64,000 nucleotides of DNA. Source: Monocercomonoides exilis PA203 (lineage: Eukaryota; Protista; Preaxostyla). A program made the position numbers and the translations under genes. The notes under the pieces were generated by a model. That model made no database searches. It had not been told where the DNA came from and saw nothing but the letters and a program-made list of their open reading frames with translations. The stretch is from positions 186,001 to 250,000 of the forward strand of contig LSRY02000034.1 of assembly GCA_001643675.2 (NCBI GenBank), read 5' to 3'. Positions 21,718 through 58,443 of the stretch are shown piece after piece; positions within the stretch are counted from its first letter, which is position 1, and the number at the start of each line of letters is the position of its first letter.

Positions 21718-24700
21718 TAGACCTGTGCGACAAGTGGCTAAATTTGTCAGTAACTGACACAGGTGACCGACAGGTCAATTATTACTGATCACAACCATTG
21801 TTTTTTTTATTATTTTCATTTTTGGGAGTATTTTTTCGAATATAAAAATAAAATGTTTTAATAATTTTTTTTTCAAATAATTGACAGAATGTTTCATGTT
21901 CCAACAAAAATTTCAAATTTTGTTGGAACATGGCAGGAAATATTTGGTTCAACAAAATGAAATAAAGAAAGAAAACTGAAAGAGAAGAAAAGAAATCAAT
22001 AGAATTTTTATCTTTGTCGAAAATGATCAAAAATATTTGATAAAGAAATATTGAATATTTTTTTCAATATTTTAGAAAATTCAATTAATCAAATTTTCCA
22101 AAATATATTTTTCGCTGACATGATCAGTGAAACAAGGAATTAAATATGCCACTGGTTGTCACTTCTGTCACTGACATTACGTTTTGTCAATGAAATAAAC
22201 AAGTTCGAAAAGGAAACAGAATAACAAAATTACTAGTCGAGCATATGAAATGTTTGAGATTTCATTTTTCCATCAATTACAACCATAACTTTTCATTTGA
22301 TATCTTGTTGTCCTTCTTTTTAAAAGCAAAAAGCATATACATATTCAAAAAAATATCTGAAGAATGCATGTGGGAAGACATTTTCTTTAAACGATTGTTT
22401 GAAGATGGATATATTTGTCAATTTCATTATTTCATTAATTTTTTTTTGTTTGACTCATTTTTCAATTTTCTTCATGTGATGTGATTTTATCCTTGAAAAT
22501 GCATATCTTATTTTATTATGAAAACATGTCTTTCAAAGTTTTTGAATGTTCGTTCCGGATCTTTTTCGAAATAAAGGATGAAATTCTTATTTTTTAAATG
22601 GAAGAAAAAAGCATTATCAATGACTTAATGGAGCATTTGAACAAGTGATGAAGATAAAAGTGTGTGCAGCCCTTGGACAAAGAAATCGAACAAATTCACT
22701 CATATGCAATAAGTGGGCAGAGTTTATTCTATTAGTTGAACAGAAAGTGCTGAATTTTAATCATAAAAATGTGTGTCATTCTAAGAAATTAATGAAATAA
22801 TGATCAATCAATACTTGCTAGGAGAATTCTGATTTTATTATATTTTTTTTTGATTGCTGGAAAATTGATATTTAAACAGAACATTCATTCAACTTCTCAG
22901 AATTCTTCACGAATGCAACACGATTCATGTTTGCTAGATAATTTATTCACATAGCTTATCATCCTCGATATAATTTTTCTTTCTTTGCACTCTCCATTCT
23001 TATGCAATGTGAAAATAAACAGATTCTATGAAAATAAATGGAAAGATTTAAAGAAATAATTCCAATTGAAAAGAATTGAGAAAAACCAGTATAAAAGAAT
23101 GAAATTTTTTAAAAGGAGAAGACGAAAGGCAGCTGGAAGTTATGAAAGAAAAATGAAGGATGGAATTCATTATTTTTTCCCCCGAAACGTGGAAGCAACA
23201 AATTTCTTGTAGATGTTTACTGAAGAAGAAAAGAATTGCGTGGAATAATCTTCAATGCAATTTTCTCTATATATTACTGTGATTGGGTTTCACTTCATTC
23301 TTTAAAGAAATTATTATTAATAAAAAAACATTCTCAAACCATCAAGCGCATGTTTTCAATTTTGTGAAATGAACAAGAAAGAAGACATTTTTGAGTCAAA
23401 AAATAAAATGAAATAGATCTGGTCAAACATTCACAAAATGATAAGAAATTTTCAATAACAAATCATCAATATTATTTTCTTCGTTAAAAAATCGAATCAA
23501 TTCTGGGATGCTAGCTACGATATCTTCGCATCCTTCTTCTGCCATCTTTTCAAAATACTTCATTTTTGTTTCCTTTCTTTTCTCTTCCTTCATTTTGTCT
23601 TTCTCCTCTTCTTTCAATCCACTTGAAATTTTCAAAAAAAAACTTCAATCCATTAAATGTCATTCCGTCATCCAACGTTGGCTGCTGAATCCCCTCAAAA
23701 ACAGCATCAACAGCTCTGCCTTTCAACAGGTCTTCAACTTGCACACCTTCACTTTTTGCTGCTTCAATTATATAAATGCACTGCTAGTTGATTTCTTTGT
23801 ATTTGACTCTTGATACTCCATGCACTCTTTCAACGCTGCTGAAAGATATAATAAATTCTTCATTCCATGATCAGTAATAGCAAAAATAATCTTCCAATGC
23901 CTAAAGCCATCTCATCAAAGCAAGCTCTTCTTTTGTCTCTTTTCCCTCTTTCTCCGCTTCCTTCTCTCTCTTCCAATCCGCACACTTCACCGACTCTTCC
24001 AACTCTCTTTCTCCCTCACGCACAAAATGCAGCTCATTCACAATCACTCCCACAAAGCTGCTGTTATTGAATAATCTTTTGATAAAAAACAGCCAAGCGA
24101 ACTGATAAGCAAGTTATGTCAGATTGTGATACTCCTGATGATTTGTGTTATCTCATTTAAATACAGCTCTTTTTTGATTTCCCAATCAGAGTCATATAAA
24201 AAAAATCAAATCGAAAAATAAGAAATATCAAAAATGAAAAAGAAGTACTCAAACGTGACATCCAATGTTGCTCAATACCTGCAATGCTATTTCCACTTCA
24301 TTTTGAATCTCCTCGTTTTCCTCTTTCTTCGATCCAACTTTCAGCAGACTGCGCACACTGACGGAAATCGATTCCAACGAAATTCTTACATTCAGAAAAA
24401 CACAGCATTCGCTGATATCAACAGGAAGCTTTTCATTTTTCCCATTCTTTCCCTTCTTTCCTTCAATTCTGATCATCTCTTTTATTCTTTTTTTCAACGA
24501 AGACTTTCTCAAGCAACAAATCCATATATTTTTAATGAAATTGCAATATTTCATGTGCTTCAGCAATACAAACGCATTTTCCAAACACATTTCCTTTTCT
24601 TCAATCATTTTGTTTATTTTATCATACGATTCAGCCTTGAAAATGGATATGAATTCTTCCTTATTCATTCCATGAACAATTTCATTCATTTCTTCGATCT

Positions 24701-25149
24701 TCTGCTTCTGTTCAGCCTCAGTGCAATGCTCAAGCTCAAGATTCAATTCCGAATAAAAAACAAGGAAAGAAATGCAATAACCATGAATTCAATAGCAATA
24801 ATGAATCCAAACCATTGAATTTTTATTTGGAATATATCTTACGCATTTTCATCATTGATTTCATTCAGGAAACGATATAATTTCTTCATAAATGTTGTAT
24901 TTGAACATGCTTGGATTTAATGAATTAAAGAAAAGCCGAATCAAAAATTGCTCATGACAACATTTGTGTTAGCACTTCTTATTAAAAGATAAATATGATT
25001 CACAACTCATTAGTTGTAAAATAATGTTTTATGAATCTGTTTATGTAATAATGGATTGAACGATCAATGATATAAAAAAAGAAATATTTGAAATAAAATT
25101 TAATTGAATTGTTTCATGCGACAAAAGCGATTTTGTGACATAAAAAACT

Positions 25150-25201
<52 letters not shown>

Positions 25202-25246
25202 TGACCGACAGCAACAAAAATTCGCTTGTCGTGTCGCACAGGTCTA
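21718..25246. mobile_element. Non-autonomous hAT-superfamily element (3.5 kb) carrying a host-family gene
   Basis: Perfect 15-bp TIR TAGACCTGTGCGACA (21718-32) / TGTCGCACAGGTCTA (25232-46); identical 8-bp TSD TTCTTTTG at 21710-17 and 25247-54. Confidence 0.9.
23423..24750 (-). pseudogene. Degenerate copy of a lineage-specific multicopy helical (ARM-like) protein family, inside the hAT element
   Basis: Colinear fragments 'ELEHC..QKQKIEEMNEI', 'KKEENEEIQNEVEIALQVLSNIG', 'VEDLLKGRAVDAVFEGIQQPTLDD' and 'FEKMAEEGCEDIVAS..HFVNV*', broken by stops and frameshifts. The family resemblance is from recall, not from a search. Confidence 0.7.
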
Positions 25247-25360
25247 TTCTTTTGAATTCGTTTACTACAAAAAATTTGATTTCGTTTTTTTATAAAAATA
25301 CGAAGGAAGAATTTTTAAGCAATTCTAAAGTGTGATCAGTCCCTTTACTCGATTTTTGAC

Positions 25361-26427
25361 ATGATTGGGCTTGATCAAATTGCTGATATAGTTCTTGGAC
25401 ATGATGAACTTCGAAAGTACTGGCCTTGGTATTTTGTAATATTGGCAGTGCATATTGTGATGCGTTATGTAACTACGCAAATTATTGCTGCTTATGTTAA
25501 AAAAACCGTGCCAAACGCAAAGCCTCATCATCCTTACAAAGCTGCTGGTATTTCTATTTCATCGATGCGCATTTACAAAATCTTTATTTGTTATATTATC
25601 AATGTGTAATATGAATTGTTATTGTCGATTTATATGAAATGCTTTTCATTTTTTAGATTCATTTTGGTTTGCAACGTATTATCTAATGACGTTCATTTGT
25701 GGAGCGAAAGTATTTATTAATGCAAACATGAATCCTTTTAAAATTATGAAACATCCGGAATTGCTTAACATGAAAGGGCCATTGCCACATTCTTTTATAT
25801 TTTTTGTTTTCAATGAAGCTGCACATTACACAACATGCTTGATCTACTATAACTTTGATAAAAGACAAAACCATTCTGATTGGTATATGATGCTTGGACA
25901 TCATTTTGCCACATTGTCTTTGATTTATCTTTCTGCCAGAATTCCAGAGTTTGATCATTTTACAGTTATTTAATTAATTCCACATTTGAAATAATTTAAG
26001 ATTCCAGCCAGGACTGATTTATTCTCTCTTTATTCATGATTTTGCAGATTTCTGGATGGAATATGCGAAATACTTCCGTTATCTTCAAAATAATGTGTAT
26101 TACTTCTTTTATTTAGTACTTGTTCCATCTTGGGGAATTCCAAGGTGCTTTATTTTCCCCGCTACCTCCATTCGTTGCTGCATCCAATATTTTGAGCGTA
26201 CGCCTCAGATCATTGCGTTAACAATTTTCGAAATCATAATTTGGATCATGGATTGTGTGTGGTGGTACATGATTCTTCTGATGCTTAAAAGAGCTCTGAC
26301 TGGCACTCTTAACAAAGATGTCAGGAGTGAAGATGAAGAAGACGTACCATTTGAGGAAAAAGAAGCAAAGAAACTTAAAACAAACTCGGAAAAATCAAAA
26401 AGAAGTTCTTCAATTAAAGGAGAATAA
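25361..26427 (+). CDS. Ceramide synthase (Lag1/TLC domain), multi-exon
   Basis: Lag1 motif 'R..SDWYMMLGHHFATLSLIYLS' ... 'LFIHDFADFWMEYAK'; C-terminal 'DVRSEDEED' typical of CerS. Confidence 0.85.
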
Positions 26428-28196: not shown

Positions 28197-28227
<31 letters not shown>

Positions 28228-29516: not shown

Positions 29517-32500
29517 TCAGCTCCACTGAGTGTCTATGATGAGCGAGGCACAGACAATTTTTGTGTCTTCAGTGCAATCGATTGCATCTGACACAGTCAC
29601 CATCGTGGCACCAGATGGGAAGTGTTGGAAAAACTCGCGCTTCATCCCAAACAGCGATGGGCGGTCGTCTTTGTTCTGCGCCACTGCCGATCTCACCAGG
29701 CGGCTGTATGTCGTCCCTTCAATTTCAGACAGATCTGGCCTCTCTCCATTCACAATCTTCTGCCCTGCCACATCTGCCTCGTACTCCCCAAACGGAACAT
29801 CCAGCGTCAGACACTCCCACAGCATCATCCCAATCGAAAACGCAACTGCCTTCTTTTTTGCTTCCATCTTCTTGTTGGCCATCAGCTCAGGCGCCTTCCA
29901 CCTCAGGCACTCTTTTTTCAAGGCATCTTCATCCTCAAATGCAGATGAGGGCAGAGAGTCTCTGTCATCATCATCATCATCACTTGTTGATGTGACAACA
30001 GTTGACGAAGAGATGGAGGATGAATCAGAATCTGAAGAAGAGCAGTCAGAGTGGAGGGCAATGCAGATGACCATGTGCTCAGAGAACAGCACAATGTGTG
30101 GACTCAGATTGGTAAGAGATTGAAGTGGATTGTTCATTTCATCAAACGAGCGGAGTGCCAGATTATCCACCCAGAACAGGATCTGAGCAGCCGTCACCTC
30201 CCTCTCCTGGAGAGTTCCGATTTCCATCTCTTTTGTCTTATTCAGCCCATGAAGCAGCATGAACAGTGAATCCCTCAAGTCAACGATCAGCTTCTCATGG
30301 GGAGACGAGCAGGCCATTGCATCCACCAGATTCGACATCGATGAAGTGGTTGGACATAAATCTTCCCCACGAACAAATGTGGATTCTGTATCTGATGTGT
30401 CTGTGGATGAAGTGGATGAAATGGATGGTGATGGTGTCCTCTTCCTCGATATATCATCTTCTTCCTCATCAACCTTCTCCAGCATCCATTGAGGGATCTT
30501 GTCTGAATCTCTTCCCAAGATATATTCAGTGGAACCACTCTCGCTCAATAAATTCTCTGATGACTCCGAATGTCCCAAGCTTTTTTCATTAACTCTCTTC
30601 TTGATCCTCTCTTCATTCTTCTTCTCTGCCTCTCTCTCTGCTCTCCTCCACTGCTCCTCAGGTGACATCTCCATCGTCACCATCTCAAAAGCTTTCGGAT
30701 CCTTCTTCACTGTGTCTTCCACAATCACCTCCAGCTCAACTGTTCTTCTCTTTTGCTTTCTCCACCGAATTGTGACAAAAATTGAAACTAAAAGCACAAT
30801 AAACAAAAGAACAACCAAAATAATTATTATCACAGTTGAAGAAGAAAACTTTCCATTTCCTCCTTCAGCAAGTTTTTCATTTCCATTTGTCCGAGATTCG
30901 CTTTTGTTCTTCAGTATCTGTGGAGAAGTTGCAGCCAATTGCTTTCCATACAATATCATCACAGACACCTCCGTTTCGTCTGCAATCGTTGAAATATTTT
31001 CTGATGGAATCATCCCAATCACTTCCGTTTCTGATACAAAACTGTCTTCCTCAAAAGGATATGTCTCAATCATCTCCACATCCCCTGTTTTATACACAAC
31101 TCTGAATGACAAGTCGCATGGCACAAAAAGAGTTCCCTTGAATTTTATCATGGCATTTCTTCCATTTTCATTCACAGAAACATCCTCCAGCACTGGGATG
31201 AACAATGGTGATGCTCGCTCCTCAACAATCCCCTTCAGCATGCATCCATCATTCAGAATCCACATCGATGAATCTGGCAACACTCCATCTCCTCCCTTCA
31301 GACTCATAATATTCACCTCAGCTGAATCAGAACACAACATGTTTCTCCGCACCGATGGATAATCCTCAATAGATGGGTTGTTGTTCTCAAATTCTCCTTT
31401 TTCAATCTTCACGTTTCCTTCACTCACAGACAATCCTCCCTTCTTGCTGTTTCTCATGGTTGTTTCTCTCAATTCCATTGTGCTCCTCTCCAAATCAACC
31501 ATCGACCCATTCCATCTACATATCTCCTCCTTCAACACATTGAAGCTCTTTCCTTCTTTGTTCCATTTCACACTCTCTCCTTCTTCTCCTCCTCTTCCTC
31601 CTCTTCCTCCTCTTCGTTCTGATTCTTCTCGTTTCCCATCAAACTCACACATTTCCATTCTCACACCCACACACCCCACCACACTCACCATCCCTCCTTT
31701 CTCCTTCGCTGATGAACATTCCCCAAAAGAACAGTTCGACAGTGTTATCATCTCTTTTCCATCCATCAACTTCATCGTGCTTCCTCCTCCTCGTGTTGTT
31801 GTGGTGTTTGCCATCTTCATCTCTTTCACACTCACCCTCGCTTCGTTCCCAACTTCAATCACATCGCTCCTCGATTCAATATCATTTACTTCTGTTTCCG
31901 ACACCACAACGCTCGATGCACAGCAGAACGAAAGAACTGCTCGAGAAACACCATGTGTGCAATCGAGCATTTGTTCATCTCAAACTCTCCTCCCTCCACT
32001 CCCACAATCGAGCTGTTCACCACATTCCCCATTCCCCAGCACTCGAACGAGCATTCCCTCATCACCAGCGATCCATTCTTCTCCTTCATTATCCACTTGT
32101 GTGTAGATTCAAACAGCACCCCAAACACAAACATGCACTTTTCCACAACACACCCTTCCACAAACACCACAACACTCTCCTCCTCTCCTCTCGCCTCAAT
32201 CTTTTTGCTCACCAAGACCCTCGCCTTTGCTTTCTTCTTTGATGCTATCCTCGCTCCTCCAACCACACACTCGCCCCCAACCATCCCTTCTCCATCAATC
32301 CACATTGCATTTCCAACCCCCTTCTCAATGTGTGTTATCCCGTTGTCGATGCTCTCACATGGCGCATCCTGTGCTCCACACTGCCTGCCATCTCTCCCAC
32401 CATACCATACAAACACCTGAGGAGCTGAATAATATATGATCCACGGAATCAGATCAACATCCTCCATCCCTGCCACATCGCTCCCGCAAATCGAGTTGTT

Positions 32501-35500
32501 CGACTTCAGCGCTTCCTGGCTGAAATCCATCGAAAACAGTTTTTCGTTGATCTGCAAATCAATTGAATCGCATCTGATAAACATATCCTTCCCCACATGT
32601 GCTTCATTCATCATGAATCGGATCCTTTCCATCCTGATCAAAAGCGGCAATGCTGAAGCCCCACCAGACTGAGCATTCGGTTCTATCCCATCAATCAGCT
32701 TCCCTCCTCCTCTCCCATTCCCTGCCGAGCACACACACATCCCAAACGAGCATTCCCTCACCCTCAGCTCCGACTCCCCACTCTTCAGCTGTACTTTCAC
32801 ACCTCCCCCTTCTTCGCTCCTCTCACTCATGCACTTTGTCAGCGCACACCCTTCCATCACACACACAATCCCAACTGCAAATGAATCCATACTCGCCACA
32901 GCTGATCTGTTGTCTCCACATGTAATATTTGTGAATGAAGAGCCATTTATCCTCAGCATCGTCTTCGAGTTTTGATTCTCATCATTCGCCACTCTGCTTG
33001 TGCGTGACGACGGACTCAATGATATCAAGCTGCATCCAGCTGAATTTGTGTTCGAAATCGACATGTTCACCACTTCAACAACTTCAACCCCTGAAGCAAA
33101 TCTCAAGAACCCTCCCATCAGACTGAACTGATCCAGCGAACAATCCTCAATCGTCACATTTCCTGCCTCAACTTCCATCACACAATATTTGGTTTCAACT
33201 GGTGGACTTCCACAAACAAATGAGCAGTGCGCAACTGACAGACATCCGCTCGGAGACAATGATTCAACAAGCGACACATGCCTCCCCAACTCACCTGGAA
33301 GATGAAACGACACATCTGCAATTGTCAGCCTCACATCCGATGCAATCATTGCTCTTTCATCTCCTCCTGCATCTCCTTCACTCACCCTCACAATTCTTCC
33401 TCTTTCTTCTCCTTCAATCACAATTTTCGGCCTTGGAAGTGCTGCTGAAGACGAAGCCAGCAGCGAGATTGGGTGATTGATGGAAGAATTGCCCTTGATC
33501 GTAATCGCTGATTCTTCTGTCTCAAGTGGCGAATATCTCAGCGAAACCACATGGTCAACTGAAGAACATGGCACAACAGAAAACCCACATCCGCTGAAGT
33601 CTCCTCCTCCTTCTCCATCAACAAACCCCTCCCCACTCCAGTTGCTCCACAAATACACAACCAGCGGAATCACATATTCCTCTCCTGTTGTTTTCCTCTC
33701 CCACCCACACAACTCATCAAATGATTCCAACTCCTCAGCACCCATTTCCCACTTGAAGTGCTCTTTGTTCACAATCTTGCTCAGATCCCATCCTGACACA
33801 AACACATTTCCTCCTCCCATCCCCGCACAGCAATCCACAAAACTCACTGATTCCATCACAAAATCTGCTGCTCCTTCCCCCAGCCACGCCATCACCCCTC
33901 CTCCATGTGCGCTGCACTTGCATCGATCAAACCTTGTTGTCACTCCGCTGGGCAATGCTGAAGTTCCAATGCGAGCCTTGCTTGCTGTTCCCTCCAACTC
34001 AACTTTCATCCCTCCACCACTCCCACTTTCGCACTCACAGTCAACGATTGTTGTGTTCCTCACCACAAATGTTTCTCCTTCCTTCACCTTCTTTGCCACC
34101 ACCACTCCATCTCCTGTTGTCCGATTCACATTCCCAATTGTCACATTCCCCAGCACGCTCTCTCCAGATGCCAATCCATTTGATGGCTGTTCTGAAAACA
34201 GTGATTGCGATAATTCCAAATCGATAACTTCGACATCGCACATCGTCAGCTGCGAGAGTCGAATAACATCAAACACCGAAGCCAATGTCGAATCACCCCC
34301 AACAACACCTGACGAGATCAACACATCCTCCAGCGAAAGTGACCCACTTCCTTCTGATACAACAAACACACTCAGCGAAGAACTGGCTGTTGCGTTGTGA
34401 TCTATTTTCACATGCTGCACATCCAGTTTCCCACTCGACACGCTGAACAGTGTTGTCGAAGATGGTGAAAGAGCTCCTGTCCCAATTGAAGTTGTCTCCC
34501 TTCCTTTTCCCACAACAATGATCTTCTTCTCACCAACACTGATTGTTTCTCTCTCACTCCCATAACTCCCACCAAGCACCGTGATTGTTGAGCTGAGCAA
34601 AATCAAGCTCTTTGCCACAGCTTGCCCAACTGTCGAACATGCCGCTAATTCGCTCGTTCCACACCATTCTTCTGAATCATCTCCTTCTTCTCCAACAAAT
34701 CGATCTTTCATTCCATCCTTCAGTCAGTTCTTCTTTTGTGTGTATTTCTCGTTATAATGAAAATCTGAATAGAACACTCTGTATTCATTGGTATTCGTGG
34801 TGTATGCTTCATAAAACGGGTTTCCCAAACTGTTGAAAAAATTGTAAAAATCAATAAATGAAACATCATGACCTATTTGGAATTCATTGCACAAGCAATT
34901 GTGAAAGACTGAAAAATAAACGTAAAAACCATCACTTGGTGCTATTTCTTGACATGGATAAAGATATAATCCTCCACCATTTGAAGCAGCAGAACATGAA
35001 ATAAACTGAAGGTTTTTCATTTTAAATTCCAACGGAGTGTGAGCACAATACATCCCTCCACCAAAATCTCCAGAAATTGAGCAAGAAGAAAATGAACAAT
35101 CATGCACATAAGCACAATCTCCACTTCCAATTTCTGTTCCTGTGCAGCCTGATCCGAAGGTGTTAAATTCATAAAAACAAAGCCCTCCTCCAGCGTTATT
35201 TGCTTTGCATTTCTGGAATTCGCAATCACTGATCCTTGAAACTGACGATATTATATATACATAAAATCCTCCTCCACTAGAGTTTTGAGATATGCATGAA
35301 TAAACAGAATTGTTTATGGCTTCAACTGACTTTATTTTTGCGCAGAATATTCCGCCACCGCTTTGATATGCTGTGCAGTCATTGAACGAACAATGAGAAA
35401 GTGAAAGAACTCCATTTCCCATGTCGAACATGCAAATGGCTCCTCCATTTGATGCAACATCTCCCCACAAATCATTCGTTCCTGTTGTCTTCGATCCATT

Positions 35501-36562
35501 CCACTCACACCAACTGAATGTATTTATCCCATTTTCTGTTTCATTTTGCCTCCCTGGCTGTTTCTTATCATCTGCAGTTCCAATAAACTCAACATTTCCG
35601 GTTCTGCTGCATCCGATAAACGAGGTGTTTGAGGCAGTCAAAGATGCCAAGGGATTGTTGAGAGATGACACAATTCCGCCATCATATGCATCACAAACTG
35701 ACGAAAACAAGCAACTTTCAACAAAAGTGGTGTGCCCGCAACAAGCAACCGGAGGATCCGCCTTTCCAGAAATTATTGATGATACGTTGGAGAAAATCAA
35801 ACCAGAAAGACAAACGCTCTCAACAAAAGGCGATGAAAGAAATGGAGGTGATGCAATTGAAAATGAAGAGAAAAATGAAGAACGAACGGAAGCTTGACTG
35901 AAGCAATGAATCTCACTTTCAGGAGGTGTTGAAGCAAACAATGGAGGCAGCAGGAACGGAAAAGAGGCCGAAGACGATCCGAGTGAAATATTCGTCAACA
36001 CCCCACAACTCCCTCGCAAAGCCAGTGGGCATGCCCCATGTCCCACCAACATGTTGCAATCTTCCATTTCCACGGTGCTCTGATCGTTTGCGCAGACAAG
36101 ACATTTTTCTTTGTCAGACATCATTCTCAGCCTCCTCCACTTCACTGACGAATTCCTCAAATTCGCACTTCCTTCAACAAAACTTTCTGAAAAGAAAGCA
36201 TTTTTGTTCTTATCGCCGTATAAAATATGGAAGTTGTTCTGCGTTAACGGCTTCCCACTCTTCTCCTTCTTTGATAAATCAATTTCAACAATTGCAAATT
36301 CATCTTTCCTCATTTCCAATTCTTCCATATTTTCAATCTTCGTTCCAATAAAATCGATGTCAAAATTTACCGAATATCTGTTTTCAAATTTATTGTGCGG
36401 TCCATAAAACGTCTCTGGACATGTTTCAGATAAAACAAATTGTTCATCTCTTGCTCCGGCAATCTCTCGAAAGCCTTGATCTGCAAATTCTGCATGAGCG
36501 TCACACATCAGTTTCCATTCCAGAACTATTATTGTCAGAGCGTTTAACAAAATGCTTGCCAT
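29517..36562 (-). pseudogene. ~2350-codon receptor-like gene: signal peptide, Cys/Gly-rich beta-helix-like ectodomain, one TM, degenerate kinase-like C-terminus; disrupted
   Basis: Three colinear ORFs joined by an in-frame TGA (34724-26, 'KKN*LKDGMKD') and a frameshift near 31950-31970. Repeated 'C...GGG(A/L/I)' motifs; TM 'VIIIILVVLLFIVLLVSIFVTI-RWRKQK'; kinase C-lobe remnants 'RWKAPE', 'FSIGMMLWECLT..PF', 'GERP', 'DRPS'. Confidence 0.8.
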
Positions 36563-36757
36563 CAACAAACACCAAACAAAATTTTGTGATAAATGAAAAA
36601 AAAGCTAATGGGTCCAAAGCTTTTAAATGAAATTGAACGAAAAATTCTTTTGGAGAATATTGAAAAGTTCATTATTCACGTTTAAATTCTAAAAACGATG
36701 TTCTTTCCATAATATTCTTTTCAGAATACTTTTTTGTGATTTATTTCAACAGCTTCG

Positions 36758-38643
36758 ATGAATCGCCGGTACTTGTCGCAGCGGGCAAGACCCGAAAACA
36801 AGCGGTACCTGATGCTGGAGCAGCTCGGGACGGGGACGTATGGGTCGGTGCGAAAGGCGTATGATTTGGAGACACACGAGTTTGTGGCGGTGAAGCAGAT
36901 CAAGCACCAGCACGGAGAATTCAACATCTCGCAGACAACGATTCAGGAGATTGCGCTGCTGAAGGAGATGGCCCATGAGAACATCGTGCGATTTGTGGAT
37001 GTTTGCTCATTGACTTTTCGGAAAGCAGTTTTTTTTTTTTCACACCGATTTCCTTCCGATTTTCTCATTTTGTTTTTTTCCCCTCTAATTATTTATTTGA
37101 TTTCTTTTTCAATTCAAAATGTGAATGAAACAGGTGAGAAGCGACCCACTGGAGAAGACGGTTGAGCTTGTGACCGAGCTTTTGGAAACTGACTTTTTTG
37201 TTTGGATTTATTTTTTTTTTTCAATTGCTTCTTTGCTTGACCCGTTATTGTCCTGTTGCTTTTATGTGCTTCTTTTTTTTTGGTTGTGCTTGTATTGGCT
37301 GTAATGCTGCTGGTTGTCTGCTCAATTGCATTTTTTTCCCTTTTGCGGGAAGATGTATCTGCACCGGGTGGATCAGCGGCTGCACTCGGAGCAGTTTGTG
37401 CGATCGGTGCTTTTCCAGGTGCTGAAGGCTGTTGGGTATCTGCATGCAAACTGGGTCATCCATCGCGATTTGAAGCCGAGCAACATTCTTCTGAATGGCG
37501 ATGGAAAGGCAAAACTGGGTGTGGGGAGAGAGACAGAAATTTGCTCCTTTTTCTTTTCTTTTCTTAAAAGAACTCCTCTTTTGTTGATAGTTAACATCTT
37601 TTGATTGCTCGTTTGTGTGCATTCATTGCTATTCTCTGCCTTTTTTTGATGTCTGATATTCTGGACTGGGGCGTTCAGCGGACTTTGGATTTGCGAGGTC
37701 GTTCCAAGCACCTCCTGAGGCGCTGTCACGTGATAAGGTGCGGGTGACACATTGGTATCAACCACCGGAGCAGGCACTGGGGGCAGAGATGTATGCGCCG
37801 TCTGTGGACATGTGGTCGATGGGGTGCATCTGCGCTGAGGCGATGACTGGATTGCCTCTGTTCCAAAGCTCTGAGAACAGACCTGAGAAGGTGCTGGAGA
37901 ACATCACGACCACCCTGGGGGACATAGAGAAGCAGTGGGCAGGGGTGCGTGCGATGGCAGAGTACAAGAAGCTGAAGGGGAAGTTGGCTGGCGGAGGCGG
38001 AGGAGGAGGTGGCGGTGGAGCACCGGGAAAAGGAGGAGCGAACGTGATCGGCTTGGGGTTGCGTAACCGTCTGGAAGAGAAGCTTGATCGGCTGTGCGAG
38101 AAGGAGCGAAGGAGAAGTCTGTATCCGGTGGAGAAACATCTGATTGGGCAGATGGTGCGGTATAATCCGGAGCTGAGGATATCGGCAGAGCAGGCGCTGC
38201 TGCACCCTTACTTCACAGTCCCTCCCGAAGAGCATCCCCACCTGTCCATTCACCGTGTGGAACAGCTGTTTGCGTCTGCCACTGCTTCGCTCGCCCGCTC
38301 GCTCGCTGCTGATCCTCAGCCTGTTCCACTGGCGCTGCGGGCCCAGGAAGGGAAATGTGGGCTGGATGAAGAGATTGAGCTAGGCACTGCCAGTTTTGAT
38401 GGGCATTGCGCAAAGTGCGAGGCGGACACATTGGAGCTGCCAGACATTCCGCTTGTGCCAATTGCGGGTGTTGTGGCGGAGCTACAACGAAAGCAGATTT
38501 TTGCGAAGGTGCATGTGTCGGAGGAGGATGCAGCGACAGCAGAGGTGTTTGGGAAGAGTGGAGTGTGCATTGCACAGCTGATCAGAGAGGTTGAGGAGTT
38601 TGGGGTGAAGGAAGGCAAAGAGGAGGAGCAGGGCACTTCTTGA
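36758..38643 (+). CDS. CDK-like (CMGC) protein kinase, 4 exons
   Basis: [14 protein letters not shown], '[13 protein letters not shown]' (PSTAIRE position), HRDLKPSN, spliced LADFGFAR, 'THWYQPPE', 'DMWSMGCI', '[13 protein letters not shown]'. Confidence 0.9.
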
Positions 38644-39251: not shown

Positions 39252-42195
39252 ATGGAAAAACATATGAAAATGAAAAGGCAGGAAATGCCGTTTGAATTTA
39301 GCAGAACCAAGGGGCGAAGAAGTAAAGGTATGAAATGTAATTTATGTATTTTCAAATGCAAAGATGAACGCATTGGTTTTACAATGAATTTGCTGATTCA
39401 GATTCACCTCTTTCCTTGGCACGAGTCGTGGCAAATCTGGAAACACAGAGCGAGTGCCGTGCGCAATTGGCAAGTGCACGCTGTATGCAGCTAAATCCTG
39501 AGCTTTTAGCATCTACATCGAGAAGCAGGGAAGCGACAAACATTTCTTCTTCATTTTGCTTTTCTCCTCCAGTTATTCGAGATTTGAATCCACAGAATGC
39601 ATCCGGGTCAGAAATGCGCATGGGTGAGTATCCCTGTGCATCTGGCAGAACGGATACAGGGTCATTTGTGCCAAGATTCTCATTTGGAAGTCAAAATCAA
39701 AGTCTTTATTCTTCCATTTCAGCTCAACCACAGCAGCAGCAAGTGCAGCATCCCAGCATTGCAAATGCTCCAAGGCCAAAGGGGGCAGGAAATAAGCCGG
39801 CTGTGAGCAAGGCATTTATGGATTCCTTGAGGAGCTCAGCTGGATCAATTCAGTTTATCTTACCAGACGGTTCAGATGCAGCACAAATAGGTACGAAAGA
39901 AAAGGATCACATGATCACCACTGAAGAAGATCAAAACAGTGAAATGAAAGATGAAGAAGAAAATGTTGAAAGAGGATCGGAAGTGAATGCTGTTGATGGA
40001 GTTGAAAGAAAGAAAAAAGATGAGGAAGAGAATGAAAATGGTGATGAGTGCTCCACTTCGGAAGAGATAAAAGCAAAAGAGTCGATTTGTCAACGAGAAA
40101 ATGAACAGGAAATTACTGAATTAACACCAACTGTTTTGGAGCATCAACTTCAAAATGAAATGGAAGAGAGAAAAGAAGATAGAGAAAGTGAGGAAGAGGA
40201 AGAGGAAGAGGAAGAAGAAGAAGAAGAAGAGGAGGAGGAGGAGGAGGAGAAAGAGAACAAAGAGAAAGAAGAGAAAGAGAGTGATGAAAGAAATGATGAG
40301 GATGAAGAGGAAGATGAGGAAGATGAGGAGGAAGGGGCAGGAGAAGGTGAAGGTGAATCTTCAAGAAACAAAGAAAAAGATGAAGAAAAGATGGAAAACG
40401 AAAACGAAAACGAAAAAGAAAAAGAAACAGAGGAAAAGGAAGCGAGAAGAGCATTTTCATCATCATTGTCCACTCTTCAGGAGCATATCATGCAGCAACC
40501 TCAAACGCCTCCATTGGCACTTCAATCTCCAGTTGCAACTGAACAATTGCAATCATCACGTTTATCTTCTTCCACAGGAAATAATACAGTTAATGAGAGC
40601 ATGGTGAGTGCATTGCAAAGGGAACAGATTGGTTCAGAAACAAAAAGAACACAAGGAAGAAGAGAAGAAGGAGGAGAAGAAGAAAGACTCATTGGAAAAA
40701 GAAGAGAAGGAGCAGAAGAGGAGAGAGCGAGATGGGATCAGCCAGATGAAAATGGAAATGGAGCGAGTGTTGCATCAGCAAAGCGGCACATCATCAAAAA
40801 TCTGAAGATTGTGAATAACGCGACGCTGAAGGAGAAGACGGAGCAGCTGATCTCAGCCACCATCCACGCGTCGATCATTGCCACACAAACAGCGCTGGAG
40901 CAGGACGAGGCATTGCTGGCAGCACACGCAGCGAGTGATTGGGATGAGAAAGAAGAAGAGCAAGGAGTGCGAGTGATGGCTGAGTCGATGGCTGAGCAGA
41001 AAGAAAAAGCGTCTGAAGGATTTGGCTTTGATTATGTTGGATATGAAAGAGAGCTTGCCGGAAAAGCGACGACACCTTCAGCAGCGCTGATGAAAGCATC
41101 GTCTATGGCACCATCTCTGTACTCTTCTGCATCGTCATCTTATTCCACATATCCTCTCTCATCATCGTCATCATCCTCAACATCATCCTATTCTTCTTCT
41201 TCTCCTCTTCCTCCTACACCTTCTCCGATGAGCAGAGCAAGCAGTGTGGGAAAGGAATTGGCTCCGGCTGTAGCGATGGTGTTTCCGGATCTGCGTCTTC
41301 CGCCGGAGACTGTGGCATTCTTGTCTGTTGGGGCGCCTGTGGTGAAGATTGGGACAGACTCTCTGTCTCGGATGTTCTACTTGACTGCCGAAGGAATCGA
41401 TCCGATGATGCGAAGGCAGCCTGTAATGCCATTAGGTGTGACTGCTTTTTTTTCTATTCCTTAAGTTTCATTGATATCTTTTTTTGAATCGTTTGCTTTT
41501 TAATGGCTGTGGTGATTGTATTCTTTGTCAATTATTTATATCCTTGGTTTTCTTTGATGTGTTATTGCTGCTGAATTGCTGCAGCTGGGAGAGAAGGGAA
41601 AGGGAGGAGAACTGAAGGAGCGAATGCGTTGGGGGTGCCGTTTGTGCGGGGAGGAGTGTTTTCGAGTGGGGCGTTTGCGGGGCTGGCGTGGCGGAAGAGC
41701 AGAGCAGGCGAAGTGGTGGGGACATGCCACTTCAGAGACATGGCTTCGATCAGGTGCTACGGCCGCTCAGGGAAAGAGCAGCGGGCTGAAAGCATGCCGC
41801 CTTCAAATGCAGACGCTGTGATGGAGAGCATCACAAACTCGAGCGATTTCTTGGCGAAGTGGGAACCGCTGGTGCGGAGCATGCAAGGGAGCAGTGGAAG
41901 TGGAGATGAAGCAGAGGAGCAAGAAGAAGTGGGATCAGTGGGTGGCAGGAGAGGAGGAAGGGATTCAGTTAAAAACAGTGGAAGGCGTGGTTCTATTCTT
42001 GAGCGTGTGCCGTTTGCGCCTGATGCAACGATGTTCTCGTTGAGGAGGACGGAGCATCGCCCGCAGATCACGTTTGCATTTGGATCTCCGTTTGAGATGG
42101 AGAGCTGGGTGATGTGCATCAGCCAGGCACATTGCGTGTGGAGAGGGATGGAGATGAAGGAGAAAATTCTGCGCGAGGAAATGGAAGCTCGCTGA
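39252..42195 (+). CDS. Hypothetical acidic low-complexity protein with possible C-terminal split PH-like domain; start uncertain
   Basis: 682-aa and 188-aa ORFs are separated by an AT-rich GT..AG intron. 'FLSVGAPVVKIG..SRMFYL' and 'FSL..QITFAFGSPFEMESWV' resemble PH strands and the terminal Trp helix. Confidence 0.55.
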
Positions 42196-51126: not shown

Positions 51127-51558
51127 CAGCTGTTATGGGAAAGTTTGAGTGAATAAACATCCAATATTATCTAACAAAGATTCGTTATTAAATTCAAGAA
51201 TCAGAAACAAATAATTTGGAAAGAGCAGAAGATTGAGGTCCCTGAATTTCTTCACAATTTTGTGACACATTGTCATAAAAATCTAATTTTCATTTGTTCA
51301 TGGGTTGCATTTAATTGAAACATAAAGTTAAATACAAAATTGAAAGTAGATCTTTGCGACAGACCGACATTTTTTGAAAGCGTTCGACAAGTCGACCGAC
51401 AAAAAAAATTTATTCAAATGTTTATTGCATTTTTTCGAATTTCTTTTTTAAATTTTCAATTCAAACAAAATAAGATAGATATAATTCACATGTATTTTCA
51501 AATAATTAATAATATATTAACAATTCATAAATAAACATTGTTTATTTTTTTCGACAAA

Positions 51559-51633
51559 GATCAGTCGGTCGAATTGATCAGCCTGTCATATAGATCAGTC
51601 TGTCAATCTGATCAATCTGTCGAATAGATCAAC
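51559..51633 (+). repeat. Subterminal 17-bp tandem repeats, consensus GATCAGTCTGTCRAWW (about 4.4 copies)
   Basis: Units start at 51559, 51576, 51593, 51610 and 51627. Confidence 0.8.
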
Positions 51634-52059
51634 TTTTATTTCAGAAAGCTGATATCATGGAAGTTTCAAATGATTATGATTTCGTTAATTTTTTTCCTCT
51701 TGAATTACAAAATTGTATTAAGACGAAAGAAGTGGTTTGAAAACATTGTTTAATTTGAACAAAAATGAATCGTTTTGATTTTTTTTTCAAAGAGCGATGA
51801 ATTGAGAAAAAAAAAAGATTTGAAAAGAAATAATTGTTCATTTGTTAAGTTGGAATATTCGAAAACCACTAATTTTGGAAAATGTGTAAAAAAGATTTAT
51901 TACGATCAAAAGTCACATCATATCTTTTTCTTCATTAAAAAAAAGATTACAAACACCCCAACAATACAGGTGAAGAAATTGGAAAAGTTCACTTTGAAGT
52001 GAACAACAACAAACTTTGGATAGCATACACTCCAGTCAAAAATGATGGCTCGTTAAAAA

Positions 52060-54803
52060 AAGGATGGCCACATATACTATTTATGTCCTAACAGCAAGCA
52101 AGGAGTCGATTGCGGGATATGTGGAAGGAAAGGAAGCGAAAGGATATGCAATCATCAATGTTCTCTGTTGAATAATTCTTGTATCGTTCAATATTTAAAA
52201 TCACCATGTTCTTCAAGCTATCAAACAAATTTTGCAACAAAGAAAATCGTGCCTTATCATTTTCAATATGATTCTTTAATTAGTCTTTTTTTGAAGCTGA
52301 TCAGTCATTGTAATATAGCTTTCTTGTCTGCTTACTCATCGGAATTTAATGCTTTTATTTCAAAATAAAAACAGATCTCACAACAATATCCTTCTTTGTC
52401 AACAGAGTCCATTTTTCCACGTTTAAATCACAGAAAACTCTCTTCAGTCATTCATGATGAAGTGAACAAAATAATCGCTGAAAGGAAAAAAATAATCCAT
52501 AATTCTATGGTTGGAGTGATGATTGATGGAGGAGTTATTGCAAGCTAAAAATATACAGTTATTACAGTAGTCCCATTGAAGGAATTTGCAAAACCATTTT
52601 TTGGAGGATAAATGAAGCTTGCTACACTTCATCAGACTATTTGAAGCTCATTACACAGATTTTAACGGAAATCAGAGATCTTCATGGAGAAGTGCGATGC
52701 TTTTGCACGGATGGTTTGCTTCCTCAACGGAAAGCAATTGAAAGTTTGAGTGAAGAAAATATTACTAAAAACTCTTTATCGATATGCACAGGAACTACTC
52801 CAATATTTGTGTATTGTTGCAATCATCTGCTTAATTTAGTGGTGAGTCATTTTTACAGAAAAAATGAATTCTTTCAAAAATTGAGAGATTCAATAATTAC
52901 ATATTCCAAACAAGTGAAAATCCTTTCTCGAAGAAATCCTTCTATTCTGAAATGCCCCACATTTGTGGAAACCAGATGGCTTTGTCTTTATGACATTTGT
53001 TGTTTCATTGGAAAACATTATCATAATGATTGTTTTTCTGAATTGAAGGAATTAATTTTTGTTGATGATGTGATCAAAAATGAACTACTTTTATTTCCTC
53101 TTAAAGAACTTCAGTTGTTCTTTGAAAAGGAAGAAATCAAGTTAGGTGATATTTTCCCTGAGATATTGAAGGCATTTGCACGGTTCATTTGGGTGCAAGA
53201 GCTGGCAGAGTTTTCCGATGAAAACTGGCGATCTGGTTTACGTCAAATCATAATTCTTTTATTTAATTTTTTCTTGGCAGGAAATCGAGGGAATATTATT
53301 TCTTTAGCCTTCTCTTTGACACCAACAGGAAGAAATCTTTATCAAGCAGGATCATTTTCCGAAACATTCTGCTCAGAATTGTGCAGGTTAAAAGAAGGAT
53401 ATAAACTGGCTTTTTCAGTGGAAACTGCTTGTTCGATTTCCAAACACGTTGATTCAAATAATGAATTACAACATTCTGATATGAATATTACGAACAAAGC
53501 AGATTCATCAAAATCCCAGGGTCGCGAACACTTATTTAAGTCAATTTCACCCTCATTTTCGTCATTTTACTCCAATGCAATTTCTTCTTCATCATCTTCT
53601 TCCTCTTCCTCTCCCTCTTCCTCTCCTTCCACTTCTCCTTCCTTTCCTTCCATTCCATCAAAACAATCAACTTCTTCTCCTTCTTGTTTGAACTCGATTT
53701 CTTTTGAAAATGAAATGGAAACTGATCATCGAAAAATCTGCAAGATGAAAAGAACAGACAAGCAAAATGTATTTCCAAATGAAACTTCAAAGCAAAAAAC
53801 TGTGAAAGATTTGTTCATTGGAAATGATTTATCTTTTCGAAAAATAATGTTTGATGTTCCATCTTCAATGACATATGAATCGAACCCCTTCACAATCGAC
53901 GCATTTTATTCCATTCTTCGTTCGTTGAATCCTGAACCTTGCGAAAATAAAAAGCAAACTTCATCGACTCAAAAGGAAAGCAATTCATCTTCTCATATAA
54001 CAATCACTGTTCCAAAGATGGATAACGAGAATCCAGATGACACGCACATTATTCAGTTACTCAAAATAGTATCAGAAAATTCTCCGTTAAGATTTAATGA
54101 ATTTTCTTCAATGGATCAAGAAGAAATTGATGAGGAAGATCTGGATATTTTTGGATTATCACAAGCTGAAAGAGATTCTGAAGAAGACGAATTTCCTGAC
54201 ACTTTTAATTCGTCTTTAACTTTCCAGAAAGAGACCAATACATATTTCACAAGAAAAGAAAGTGAAAAAGAAACCAATGAAATAAGGAGCAAAGAAAGAA
54301 GCGAAGTTGCTGAAATCAATGATGATGACGAATCCTCAGACAATTCTGAAAATGATGATGATCTTCGATTTATTGGCTCAAGTGAATTTATTGAATTTGG
54401 AAAATTGAAAAATATGGATCAGAAACAAATGACAATTAGAAGCATTATCGAAACAATAAAGATGGATTGGTTTATAAGAATGAAAAGTGGATTTCATCAA
54501 TATGCGTCAAATGTTCTTTCAAACCAAAACAAAGAAGTTATGGAACATGTGGAAGCTTTGTATTCTTCTTTTATTTTTGACTGTCATCAGTCTGTTGTGC
54601 TTGATAATTGTTTTGTTTTATTCTCTGAAATTAGTAAACTTGATCATTTTCACTCAATTTTTTCAAACATTTGTTTCGCTTTAATAACTTTCCCCTGTAG
54701 CGAGACTTCTTGCGAGCGACTATTTTCAAGGCTTCGTCGTATCGTGGGGGATAGAAGACACTTTCTTTCATTGGAAATGCTGAATTCTTTGCTTCTTCTT
54801 TGA
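52060..54803 (+). pseudogene. hAT transposase; 5' part disrupted, 720-aa core open
   Basis: Cys-rich BED-like remnant at ~52070-52165; 'VGVMIDGG' (D1), 'FCTDG' (D2), 'YCCNHLLNL' (CxxH), 'ETRW', dimerization domain 'FPCSETSCERLFS..GDRRHFLS'. TAA stops at 52366 and ~52546 and a frameshift near 52600. Confidence 0.85.
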
Positions 54804-55392
54804 AAGTTTTCATTATTTCATTTTATAACATAAATTCAAAACAATTGATTAATTTGTTTTTTTTTAATATTTCAGTTTTTGAAACACTGATAATTATTTA
54901 AGCTCAAATTATCTAAAAGATAATATTCTGAACGTCAATTGAAACAACGATAAAAAACTATTAAATGTTGACTCTTGGAAACAAGCTGCAACTTTCCTCA
55001 AATCGTTAATAAGAAAAAAACGAATTACACAAGTTATTTCTTCATTCTCTTTTTAATGTGATTTTAAATTTGATTTTCATCGATGACAACAACCATTCGT
55101 TGAAAAATAAAAAGTTAGTTGTCATTGGAATGTCATTTCTATCCTGAATAAATCAATCTTAATTTTGATTGATAGATAAATACATTTGAAATTGCATTTC
55201 AAAACTGAAATATCACAAAATCATCACTTAAAAGTTCTCGTTTCCACTTTTAAAGATTCTCATAAGATAATATGAGTTTTTCATTTATTTTGCCTCCTTT
55301 TTTTAAGTTTCAACTTCTTCTCAATTTTTTCATCTCCTCCGTTCAAAACTCTTTGCTGCCTAAAATATGAAATATATTCATTTCGAATAGTT

Positions 55393-56610
55393 TTACACTC
55401 CTCTTTCAAAATTGACTTCTTTTTCTTTCATTCTTTTTCTATCACTTTCACAAATTGCATCTGACATCGTTATCATCACAGCGCCTGTTGGATAACGTTG
55501 AATAAACTCTCTCTTCAGAGGAGTCTGCGATAATCTTTCTAAGGGATCACCTGACAGACACACATTCACCACATTCTTTGAGTGTTTTCTTCTGGATTGC
55601 TTCCAAGTTTGACCTCTCCCCGTTCGCAATCTTCTGCCCAGCAGCTTCTGCTTCGTATTCCCCAAACGGGATCTGCAGCGTCACACACTCCCACACCATC
55701 ATCCCAACAGAAAACACAACCGTCTTCTTCGTCGCATTCTTCGTTGCTCCGCTCAGCAGCTCCGGAGCCTTCCACCTCATGCACTCCTTCCTGTTGTCTT
55801 CCTCATCCTCAAATGCCGATGAGGGCAGAGAATCTCTTTCATCGCCATCATCACTGGTAGATGTCACAACTGTTGAAGAAGAGATGGAGGATGAATCCGA
55901 GTCTGAATCTGATGAACAATTCGAGTGCATCGCAATGCAAATGATCATATGCTCTGAAAACAACACAATGTGTGGACTCAGATTTGTCAGCGATTGAAGT
56001 GGCACTTCGCATTCATCAAATGAATGAAGTGCCCCATTCGCCACCCAGAACAGGATCTGAGCAGCCATCACCTCCCTCTCCTGGAGAGTGCCAATCGCCA
56101 TCTCTTTTGTCTTATTCAGCCCATGAAGCAGCATGAACAGCGAATCCCTCAAGTCAACGATCAGCTTCTCATGAGGAGACGAGCAGGCCATCGCATCCAC
56201 CAGATTCGACATCGACGAGGTGGTTGGACACAGATCCTCCCCTCGAACAAATGTTGAATCTGAATCAGTTGTCGAAGTGGTGATAGTGGACGAAATGGAT
56301 GGAGAAGGAGATCTCTTCCTTATCTCTTCTTCCTCCTCCTTTTCTAAGGTCCAATCAGGGATCTTATCTGAATCCTTTCCCAAAATATATTCTGTTGAGC
56401 CACTCTCGCTCAAAAGATACTCTTCAGACTCCGAATGCACCATCTCCTTCCCATTCATTCTCTTCTTCATCCTCTCTTCGTTCTTCTTCTCTGCCTCTCT
56501 CTCGGCTCTTCTCCACTGCTCCTCAGGTGACATTTCCATTGTAACCATCTCAATCAACTTCGGATCTTTTCTGACGTTGTCATTCACAATCTCTTCCTGT
56601 TTTTCTGAAT
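55393..56610 (-). pseudogene. 5'-truncated cytoplasmic (kinase-like) half of the receptor-like family seen at 29517-30730
   Basis: Long identical peptides shared with the 29517 gene ('MVTMEMSPEEQWRRAEREAEKKNEER', 'FVRGEDLCPTTSSMSNLVDAMACSSPHEKLIVDLRDSLFMLLHGLNKTKEM'). No TM or ectodomain; frameshift near 55580. Confidence 0.88.
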
Positions 56611-56727
56611 TGCTCTATCCGATTTATAAACCAGCTCAAAACATTTTTATAAGAGATTCAATCAATGCAAATTACCATTTTTAAATATCACAACTCAAAC
56701 ATTTGTTTTCAAGTGTGTGATTTTCGC

Positions 56728-57015
56728 AAAAAAAGAAAAGAAAAGAAAAGAAAAAGAAAAAGAAAGAATGAATGAAAGAAAAAGCAGAAAAAGAAGAAAA
56801 AGAAGAAAAAGAAGAAAAAGAAGAAAAAGAAGAAGAAGAAAAAAAAAAGAGAAGAGAAAGCGAAAAGGAAGGAAGAGGAAAAGAAATGGGAAGAAGAGAG
56901 AAAGAAAAAGAAAGAAGAAGAAAAATTAAGAAGAGAAAAAGAAGAAGAAAAAGAAAGAAGAAGAAAAAGAAAGAAAAAGAAAAAGAAGAAGAAGAAGAAG
57001 AAGAAGAAGAAGAAG
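56728..57015. repeat. Polypurine microsatellite tract ((GAAAA)n, (GAAAAAGAA)n, (GAA)n)
   Basis: About 290 bp almost entirely A/G, immediately upstream of the captured fragment. Confidence 0.9.
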
Positions 57016-58443
57016 CAACTTATCGGACAAATGGCTTATAAAATCATTAACCTTTAATGAATATTATTTTTCTTTGTTACAAAAAGCATCAAAAATTAAC
57101 AAACAAAATAAAAAACGTTTTAAAAAAAACAAATATTTGACGAGTAATCTTCAATTTGAACTTCTGAATGTCGAAAGTTCGATTGCAAGGTTCCAATTGA
57201 CTGCTGTTTAAATAACCAATTCTATTGTTGAAATTAACGATTTGATATATTATCTGATTCTGTTTGTTGAAAAAAAAAGAATAAGAACAACAAAATATCA
57301 TCATCTTATAAAAATAATCTTAGATAAAAGAAAAATTGCCTCAAACCTGTTCTGAACAATGTGTTTTTTATAAAACAAATATATTTGAATCTCTTTATTG
57401 ATTGCTTTCTTATTTATGTCTTATATGCAGATATTGCATATCAAGCAATAACATCAAAATTATGAAACAAGAGATAATGAAATAAATGCATATGAACAAA
57501 CAATATCGTTTTATAAATTAATTAACAATAAAAAAGAAAATATTCAAAGTTAAGAGTGCAAAATTTTGCATCAAACTTTTCTCACAAGGAAATTGAACTT
57601 ATTTTCTAATTTGGCGCATAAAAACATAGCTTACAAATCGGATCTCCAACGAATGTATTTCGATCAAATGAATTATAAATTTTTTCGATAATTTTTTATT
57701 CTTTTTTTATTTGAATTAAAAATTAACACAAATTAATTGATAGGAATTCAATAAATTGAGAAAGTTTGCAATAAAAACGATGATAACACACTTTTTGGAT
57801 AATAATTGAGAAATTTAACAATTCGACAACGAAAGACTTATTCGACCGACACAATAATTAAAAAAATGAGTTGTCGCAAAGGCCTAATTGAAAGATTAAT
57901 AAAACAAACAATTTAAGATTTTAATTAATATTCAAATTATTTGTTATGTTGTCATATTTTTTTCTATTTGAAAAGAAAAAGTACAAATAGAATTATTATA
58001 ATAAAATGCACGGTAATCTGATGCAATATCATGCTTTTCAATAATGTTTCATCGGAAGATGATTTTGGAGTTGTGGATAGTTGAATGCTTCAAAAATAAT
58101 ATTGAAGACAATATTATTTAATTCTTTTTTCCGCAAAATATCACTTATATTGTCAGGGATAAAACACGAGATAAGGACAAAACGTGGGATATTCCATTCA
58201 GCTTTTTTTTTTGACACAATTCAACACTTTTGCATAAAAAAATTACAAACTTTCGAGTTTTTCGTGTATTTGGGTGGATCGAATAAGCCAGATGTAAATA
58301 TCTGAATTGAATTTGCATCAAAAATATCAGTTAAAAAAGATTGGCGCTTTAAAAGCAATTGAAAACAAAGCACTGTTGAATAACGTCGAATCATGTTTAT
58401 ATAAGCAAAGAATAAATAATTTGTGACTCACATTAAATTTTTT

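Follow-up and report, generated by a model that had tools for sequence, protein, structure and literature searches.

Related hAT transposons carrying sequences of two large host gene families in the protist Monocercomonoides exilis

Can a family of DNA transposons capture members of the expanded gene families of its host and disperse them through the genome? This question is raised by a stretch of 64,000 nucleotides of the Monocercomonoides exilis assembly (C30:186001-250000; 82.3 Mb in 101 contigs), referred to here as the window, in which an earlier note had described two hAT-like elements, one enclosing an armadillo-like (ARM-like) gene and the other the tail of a receptor pseudokinase. The answer reached here is a narrower one: the two elements are probably members of one hAT clade with captured and locally converted host cargo, the gene families themselves not having been built by the elements.

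Both elements were found where they had been described, each with related 15-bp terminal inverted repeats (TIRs) and perfect 8-bp target-site duplications (TSDs). The subterminal motif GACCGACA lies near all four ends, and each element encloses a different multicopy sequence of the host. Element 1 (WA), a TIR pair with TSDs spanning 21718-25246 of the window (3,529 bp), is composed as follows:

21710-21717, left TSD, TTCTTTTG
21718-21732, plus strand, left TIR, TAGACCTGTGCGACA
21733-23367, non-coding left arm, matching other A-type elements only
21765-21772, plus strand, left subterminal GACCGACA, putative transposase-binding site
23426-24755, minus strand, cargo: decayed, near-complete ARM-like gene (residues ~17-437 of the consensus)
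25151-25199, plus strand, 49-nt poly-T tract in the right subterminal region of the A family
25203-25210, plus strand, right subterminal GACCGACA, oriented as at the left
25232-25246, minus strand, right TIR, TAGACCTGTGCGACA
25247-25254, right TSD, TTCTTTTG

Element 2 (WB), likewise a TIR pair with TSDs, spans 51347-57886 (6,540 bp) and, as had also been recognized, codes for a hAT-like transposase:

51339-51346, left TSD, ATTGAAAG
51347-51361, plus strand, left TIR, TAGATCTTTGCGACA, two changes from the family consensus
51362-51369, plus strand, left GACCGACA, abutting the left TIR (second copy at 51394-51401)
51939-54803, plus strand, hAT transposase gene with two frameshifts, its last 758 codons open
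55550-56614, minus strand, cargo: open fragment of 355 codons, receptor-kinase cytoplasmic tail
56704-57057, plus strand, AG-rich minisatellite with a period of ~9 nt, beside the 5' junction of the cargo
57844-57851, plus strand, right subterminal GACCGACA
57872-57886, minus strand, right TIR, TAGGCCTTTGCGACA
57887-57894, right TSD, ATTGAAAG

A minor correction to the earlier note concerns the two TIRs of WB, which differ at 2 of their 15 positions; as the consensus of the B family is TAGGCCTTTGCGACA, the left one is the mutated copy.

The relationship of both elements to the rest of the genome was established with a degenerate TIR pattern, which matched 4 times in the window, where shuffled sequence gave an expectation of 0, and 166 times genome-wide, against a single match for the reversed pattern used as control. 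Of the genomic matches, 64 are TIRs of the 'A' kind and 101 of the 'B' kind; the two kinds have 13 of 15 bases in common. The pairs retrieved with their flanks (21 A and 32 B) made up, together with WA and WB, a set of 55 elements, and the scan for TIR pairs with 8-bp TSDs that had been proposed gave the following result: 41 of the 55 are flanked by perfect TSDs, 40 of them distinct, and in 4 further elements, such as L019, the duplication has a one-base mismatch. The target consensus of hAT transposons is nTnnnnAn. Position 2 of the TSD was T in 23 of the 41 cases (56%) and position 7 was A in 21 (51%), against a background of ~33% in both instances, so that the preference is moderate. TSDs of 8 bp, TIRs of 15 bp (the hAT range being about 10-25 bp) and this target preference all place the elements among the hATs. 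As for GACCGACA, in 53 elements of both lineages there is about one copy to each end, ~50 bp in from the left terminus and ~40 bp in from the right one, and close to none in the interiors. Its orientation is the same at both ends of A and B elements, that is, direct and not inverted, which confers a built-in polarity on them, and its placement makes it a candidate transposase-binding site.

Mobility of the whole units, cargo included, was checked by looking for the same combination of cargo and TIRs at several loci, as had been suggested, and it was found at no fewer than 21 A loci and at 2 verified B1 loci, with different TSDs. The family of WA comprises at least 21 copies with different TSDs, and full-length copies of WA are present on other contigs at 96%, 92%, 85% (this one holding a nested element) and 75% identity. 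Between the A copies L010 and L019 there are 9 substitutions over ~3.4 kb, and their flanks are not related, which indicates that the family was recently mobile. L019 itself lies inside an element of the B3 subfamily, near its positions 180-190 (C91:1291632-1296011), which shows a recent insertion of one hAT into another. As regards WB, it aligns end to end with its sister L051 (C69:1771586-1777940), the TSDs being different; these are the two B1 loci verified with cargo. Four further B1-like transposase loci exist, one of which, on C32, has a receptor tail beside it and is a probable third cargo-bearing B1 copy. A chance arrangement, in which two unrelated solo hAT ends flank ordinary host DNA without forming a mobile unit, does account for some of the genomic TIR 'pairs', whose TSDs are mismatched (L022, L025, L028 and L045). 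For WA and WB it is refuted by their perfect TSDs and by the recurrence of the complete unit elsewhere with other TSDs, which leaves this explanation with a practically negligible probability.

The two lineages are also linked through the transposase. WA and at least 20 further copies of its family encode none, and are thus non-autonomous in the manner of Pack-TYPE elements. L016, an 8.2-kb element with A-type TIRs, holds a decayed transposase 40% identical to that of B1, from which it follows that the A and B lineages are sisters within a single hAT clade. In WB, the gene is interrupted by frameshifts at about 52057-52088 and 52572-52602, within its first ~220 codons, and at the protein level it shows 92-95% identity with the open reading frame (ORF) of L051, which is intact and measures 953 aa. 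The hAT dimerisation domain PF05699 was detected in L026 with 21.7 bits, just above the cutoff of 21.4, L051 (19.6 bits) and WB (13.9 bits) both remaining below it. A profile of six transposases had Hermes as its best PDB match (E=4e-4), with CxxH-like and SERxFS-like blocks aligned, a PDB search with a single transposase sequence having returned nothing relevant. As regards an N-terminal zinc finger of the BED type, C49, C58, H72 and C74 are invariant in the transposase alignment, yet no Pfam BED match was obtained. In the genome as a whole, at least 20 transposase-like open frames of ~900-1,016 aa were found, belonging to several subfamilies with 33-100% identity.

'B' TIRs bound at least 7 subfamilies. 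Among these, the B2 elements L026, L033 and L039 measure 9 kb, encode intact 900-aa transposases (54% identical to that of B1 over the N-terminal ~490 residues and 29% over the remainder) and hold a shorter receptor-tail fragment at the place equivalent to that of the B1 cargo. The abundant B3 and B5, the two largest non-autonomous subfamilies, were matched only by other copies of the elements, no host-family sequence being detected, and a Pfam search of the internal ORFs of B2, B5 and B7 elements gave nothing. Two B5 copies, L047 and L048 (C53:492158-496120 and 499224-503187), are 100% identical, lie 3 kb apart in inverted orientation and have mirrored flanks, which speaks for an inverted segmental duplication and not for two transpositions.

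The ARM-like gene is carried, on the minus strand and near the right end, by 18 of the 21 retrieved A pairs, including all those of ~3-3.9 kb except L005, and its position and orientation are constant across the copies that carry it. In WA it can be aligned with residues ~17-437 of the consensus in essentially one frame, with 6 in-frame stops and 1 frameshift. An intron-like AT-rich insert follows '...SNIG', at the point where the open frames of host loci end; it is probably a retained intron, which would suggest capture as genomic DNA. The first ~179 codons matched 150 scored loci among 1,665 first-look candidates in the genome, as well as 201 representative proteins, typically of ~435 aa, annotated as hypothetical proteins of M. 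exilis. No Pfam domain was found in the proteins of this family. The label 'ARM-like' seems fair at the level of the fold, the predicted structure being an all-alpha solenoid (predicted local distance difference test, pLDDT, 80) that resembles, among PDB entries, armadillo-repeat proteins and importin-alpha best.

The direction of transfer has to be considered here, as the ARM-like gene could be native to A-type hATs and the genomic family consist of element copies that have lost their ends. In this respect, the gene keeps a constant place in the A elements carrying it, the transposase-bearing L016 included, the family is lineage-specific, with no Pfam domain and with stop codons at many loci, and the element-borne copies can form one clade. 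Nevertheless, among the 150 best ARM-like loci only 3 fall within TIR pairs (an approximate count, the genome searches having scored only part of the first-look candidates), and the DNA homology of host loci to WA ends with the gene, never reaching into the arms. Host genes are clustered in arrays (~19, for instance, on C48, a contig of 658 kb), with many intact, annotated genes among them, while the element-borne copies are all decayed, with 1-17 stops each. We therefore regard the reverse direction as very unlikely. One old capture of the gene from the host followed by amplification offers the economical reading, a single origin not being rejected by the trees: in the approximately unbiased (AU) test, the tree holding the element-borne genes together was better by 57 log-likelihood (lnL) units (p-AU 0.93). 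Multiple captures, suggested by the scatter of element-borne genes in FastTree and quick IQ-TREE runs, were dropped because this test favoured the constrained tree. In all these trees, element-borne pseudogenes were read through with X at stop positions.

The cargo of WB has its relatives in the window itself. A giant receptor-like gene, a host paralog, is located at 29517-36568 on the minus strand, in three long ORFs, with a weak beta-helix match, a transmembrane-like segment and a kinase C-lobe. Positions 4264-5251 of WB (55610-56597 of the window) are 81% identical in DNA to 29736-30732, the 3' end, or tail, of this gene; the cargo corresponds to host residues ~414-754, in the kinase C-lobe. 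Across the genome, the 346-aa ORF of the WB cargo matched 117 scored loci among ~1,360 candidates at 77-86% identity. Nearly all of these 117, and most of the 117-127 loci scored in the receptor-tail searches, lie within open frames of 2,500-4,200 aa, uninterrupted in the case of the former, so that the cargo of WB can be identified as the cytoplasmic tail encoded by the largest family of the host, for which there are at least 1,300 candidate loci. Contigs from RNA runs lie on the cargo core and flanking bins (55546-56727). On WB they match only short conserved pieces of the cargo, of 41-75 nt and with diverging ends, and none lies on the backbone, although such contigs cannot show absence. 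They were accordingly rejected as a sign of transcription of WB, these short conserved pieces coming probably from host genes. The depth of DNA contigs was also raised, ~15-40-fold, over the core of the cargo at 55940-56333, all the DNA runs found being from one sample. What the depth and the RNA contigs reflect is the core of the host tail family, which is expressed and highly conserved.

A cargo inserted secondarily into an immobile hAT would carry its own TIRs and TSDs, and the earlier note had named this as an outcome that would speak against capture. None were found around the cargo of WA or WB. The inserts in L014, L021, L028, L030 and L036 do have TIRs of their own.

A further question is how the cargo has fared since its uptake, and here the two B1 elements are informative. 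The backbones of WB and L051 are ~96% identical, while their cargos show only 66-85%. Over 1,005 bp, the cargo of L051 has a DNA identity of 99% with C69:1798986-1799990, the tail of a host gene 26 kb away that forms an intact ORF of 2,658 aa, and the two agree at 100% in protein; the next-best matches (85-87% in DNA, 89-92% in protein) are mostly on C69 too. The WB cargo does not exceed 83-84% identity with any host tail; 3 of its 8 best matches are on its own contig, C30, and viewed in windows of 75 nt it forms a mosaic, the nearest host tail changing from stretch to stretch. The same signature of low cargo identity is seen in B2 (L026 against L039), and the ARM-like cargo of L003 and L020 shows sharp low-identity patches of 120-200 bp, the one in L003 being nearest in translation to host proteins and not to any A copy retrieved. 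The gap in identity between backbone and cargo, together with the 99% match to a local host gene, leads to gene conversion from local paralogs, and the best reading of these alignments is that conversion from local host paralogs into the element is the dominant ongoing process. Exchange with host genes and its local bias are directly visible in the sequences; the direction from host to element would follow from the L051 tract belonging to the type local to C69.

Alternatively, each copy or subfamily could have taken its cargo afresh from a nearby family member, the elements being active serial capturers. The 99% identity of the L051 cargo over the entire homologous stretch would fit such recurrent captures, as would the other parts of the receptor gene carried by the C-type elements in L030 and L021 and by an unrelated long-TIR element in L028. 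Yet the cargos of WB and L051 occupy the same position and orientation in a 96%-identical backbone, the sharp-edged patches of L003 and L020 are typical of conversion tracts and not of captures, a single A origin is not rejected, and B3 and B5 show no host-family cargo. On balance, independent recapture of this kind is unlikely. A different extension of the data would be that cargo-bearing hATs shuttle variants between clusters of receptor-kinase genes, being converted in one place, transposing, and donating the tract to paralogs on another chromosome. We consider this quite unlikely; if true, these hATs would move variants between locally homogenised clusters and contribute to the concerted or mosaic evolution of the receptor-kinase family.

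The process that we propose, a few old captures followed by transposition and conversion, would run as follows. The transposase would bind the 15-bp TIRs and GACCGACA, cutting and pasting the elements and leaving 8-bp target duplications, and it may be active at present. An ancestor of each lineage would have taken up host DNA between its ends. Such captures are usually modelled as template switching while the gap left by excision is being repaired. The A lineage would have taken in a whole ARM-like gene, apparently with its intron, and B1, probably its relative B2 too, the last ~1 kb at the 3' end of a giant gene for a receptor kinase. From then on the cargo would have ridden as a passenger through every transposition and decayed, being repeatedly overwritten in patches by host genes, chiefly neighbours on the same chromosome; this repetition is understandable as each cargo has more than 1,000 paralogs.

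Several points weigh against this account. No donor junction was found, and the capture event itself was not observed. The 99% match of L051 spans the whole homologous region, so that a fresh re-capture at the same site is possible. Without the constraint, the ARM-like tree scatters the element-borne genes, with 7 changes of label, at least 2 of them forced by well-supported branches, and their monophyly could be due to long-branch attraction among pseudogenes. The argument on intron retention is built on the open-frame lengths of host loci as reported by the searches, and the flanks of host ARM-like loci were judged by coordinates. Counts inside and outside elements are approximate, the genome searches having scored a subset of the candidates.

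Regarding the claim that such Pack-hATs capture and disperse gene families, it is supported in part, inasmuch as related hATs carry host-family sequence and have taken it to several loci. A system that captures and disperses the families is not supported: there were few captures, what is carried consists of pseudogenes or fragments, the host members are intact giant genes or stand in arrays, and the number of the best ARM-like loci within TIR pairs is as small as given above. The carried copies amount to about 1-2% of each family, which, the captures being few and old, describes Pack-type hitch-hiking and not a system for family dispersal. From candidate counts and gene length, the share of the genome is estimated at ~13-19% for the receptor family and at ~3% for the ARM-like one; with shares of this size, the cargo could be drawn from both without special targeting. 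Moreover, conversion keeps a cargo recognisable, so it biases which cargo is noticed.

Pack-hAT elements have already been described from maize and rice (Gisby & Catoni 2022, PMC8903248). The elements described here resemble the Pack-TYPE elements of plants (Pack-hAT, Pack-MULE) in being TIR elements with the TSDs of their superfamily and an interior of host gene sequence, amplified together with a cargo that is usually a fragment or a pseudogene. In fact, their interior derives from host genes that exist outside the element, the cargo is not a nested transposon, and the elements have been mobilised with it. They differ in several respects, beginning with the host, a metamonad protist. Lack of autonomy is part of the definition of Pack-TYPE elements, whereas cargo-bearing B1 and B2 elements still encode transposase, as is the case of WB and L051. 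Few captures were each amplified, in place of many different cargos; serial capture, with many cargos per transposon family, is not seen, each lineage having one cargo type. Finally, both cargos come from families of more than 1,000 members and are overwritten by local gene conversion. In fungi, a hAT-mediated amplification of a housekeeping gene has been reported (Mob DNA 2019, PMC6710886); the likeness is that a transposon there reportedly carries and multiplies a whole host gene in a non-plant genome, and the difference that the gene there is single-copy, while here it is a member of a huge family and its copies are decayed. With Hermes, Ac and hobo our elements have in common the 8-bp TSD, the short TIRs, the short subterminal motifs, the nTnnnnAn preference and a putative C-terminal hAT dimerisation block with a SERxFS-like motif. 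In contrast to those, their transposase has diverged strongly (a profile gives ~22 bits to Hermes, a single sequence no match) and is split by a low-complexity Ser-rich insert, the TIR starts with TAGRC, and the subterminal motif points the same way at the two ends.

Proteins of the window have homologues named M. exilis MONOS_*. For the published ONT assembly of this species, about 46% repeats have been reported, with 35% unclassified repeats overlapping the tyrosine-kinase family and 4.5% DNA transposons, with no mention of hAT elements or gene capture (PMC8767320). Our literature searches brought up no previous account of Pack-type capture from a metamonad, and what is new here is a Pack-type hAT in such a host, with the added twists of cargo copies that encode transposase and of conversion with a huge pool of paralogs. 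The work provides a curated hAT clade, with its TIRs, a candidate binding motif, at least 20 open frames of transposase length and near-identical copies. Transposons which carry fragments of the families are one source of the confusion of 'repeat' with 'gene family', and annotators should be cautious, since family counts include transposon-borne pseudogenes. Furthermore, the 99%-identical donor 26 kb from L051 documents that element-borne fragments are involved in gene conversion together with their paralogs in the host.

Other TIR lineages and nested insertions came to light in the course of the analysis. The larger pairs L024, L028, L030, L036 and L045 were considered as having extra cargo, and four of the five (all but L024) turned out to be nested transposons or adjacent elements. 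A third hAT variant, the C type, with TIRs TAGACCTGTGTGACA / TAAACCTGTGTGACG, is nested at L030:437-5747 (C14:834844-844009, in a B5 element) and at L021:3144-7059 (C47:226571-234035, in an A element); these copies have their own 8-bp TSDs, ATTTCTTC and AGAATAAC, and each contains fragments of receptor genes. This lineage escapes the original TIR pattern. In L028 (C12:495617-503309), whose outer TIR pair has mismatched TSDs, two nested elements at 747-3147 and 3719-5581 have TIRs of ~45-50 bp unrelated to those of hATs; the first holds a 502-aa fragment of a receptor ectodomain and the second has the 8-bp TSD GAAATTAG. The presence of receptor fragments in several types of element means that several TIR lineages of this genome carry pieces of receptors. 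The A element L014 (C47:1812566-1820895) contains a nested insertion of 4.8 kb with a 1,145-aa ORF at L014:1283-4717, on the minus strand, in which a tyrosine-recombinase domain (PF00589, 30 bits) was recognized, and which is probably a Crypton- or DIRS-like element. In L036 (C26:148380-154642), a 2-kb nested element at 711-2724, with GGGTTAT... TIRs and TTA/TAA flanks, is reminiscent of PIF/Harbinger.

In the window, two more ORFs lie on the plus strand just past the 5' end of the giant receptor gene, in a region dense in kinase-family genes: a separate one at 37738-38643, with a canonical Pkinase C-lobe (E=5e-15), and one of 682 aa at 39416-41464, for which no Pfam match was obtained.

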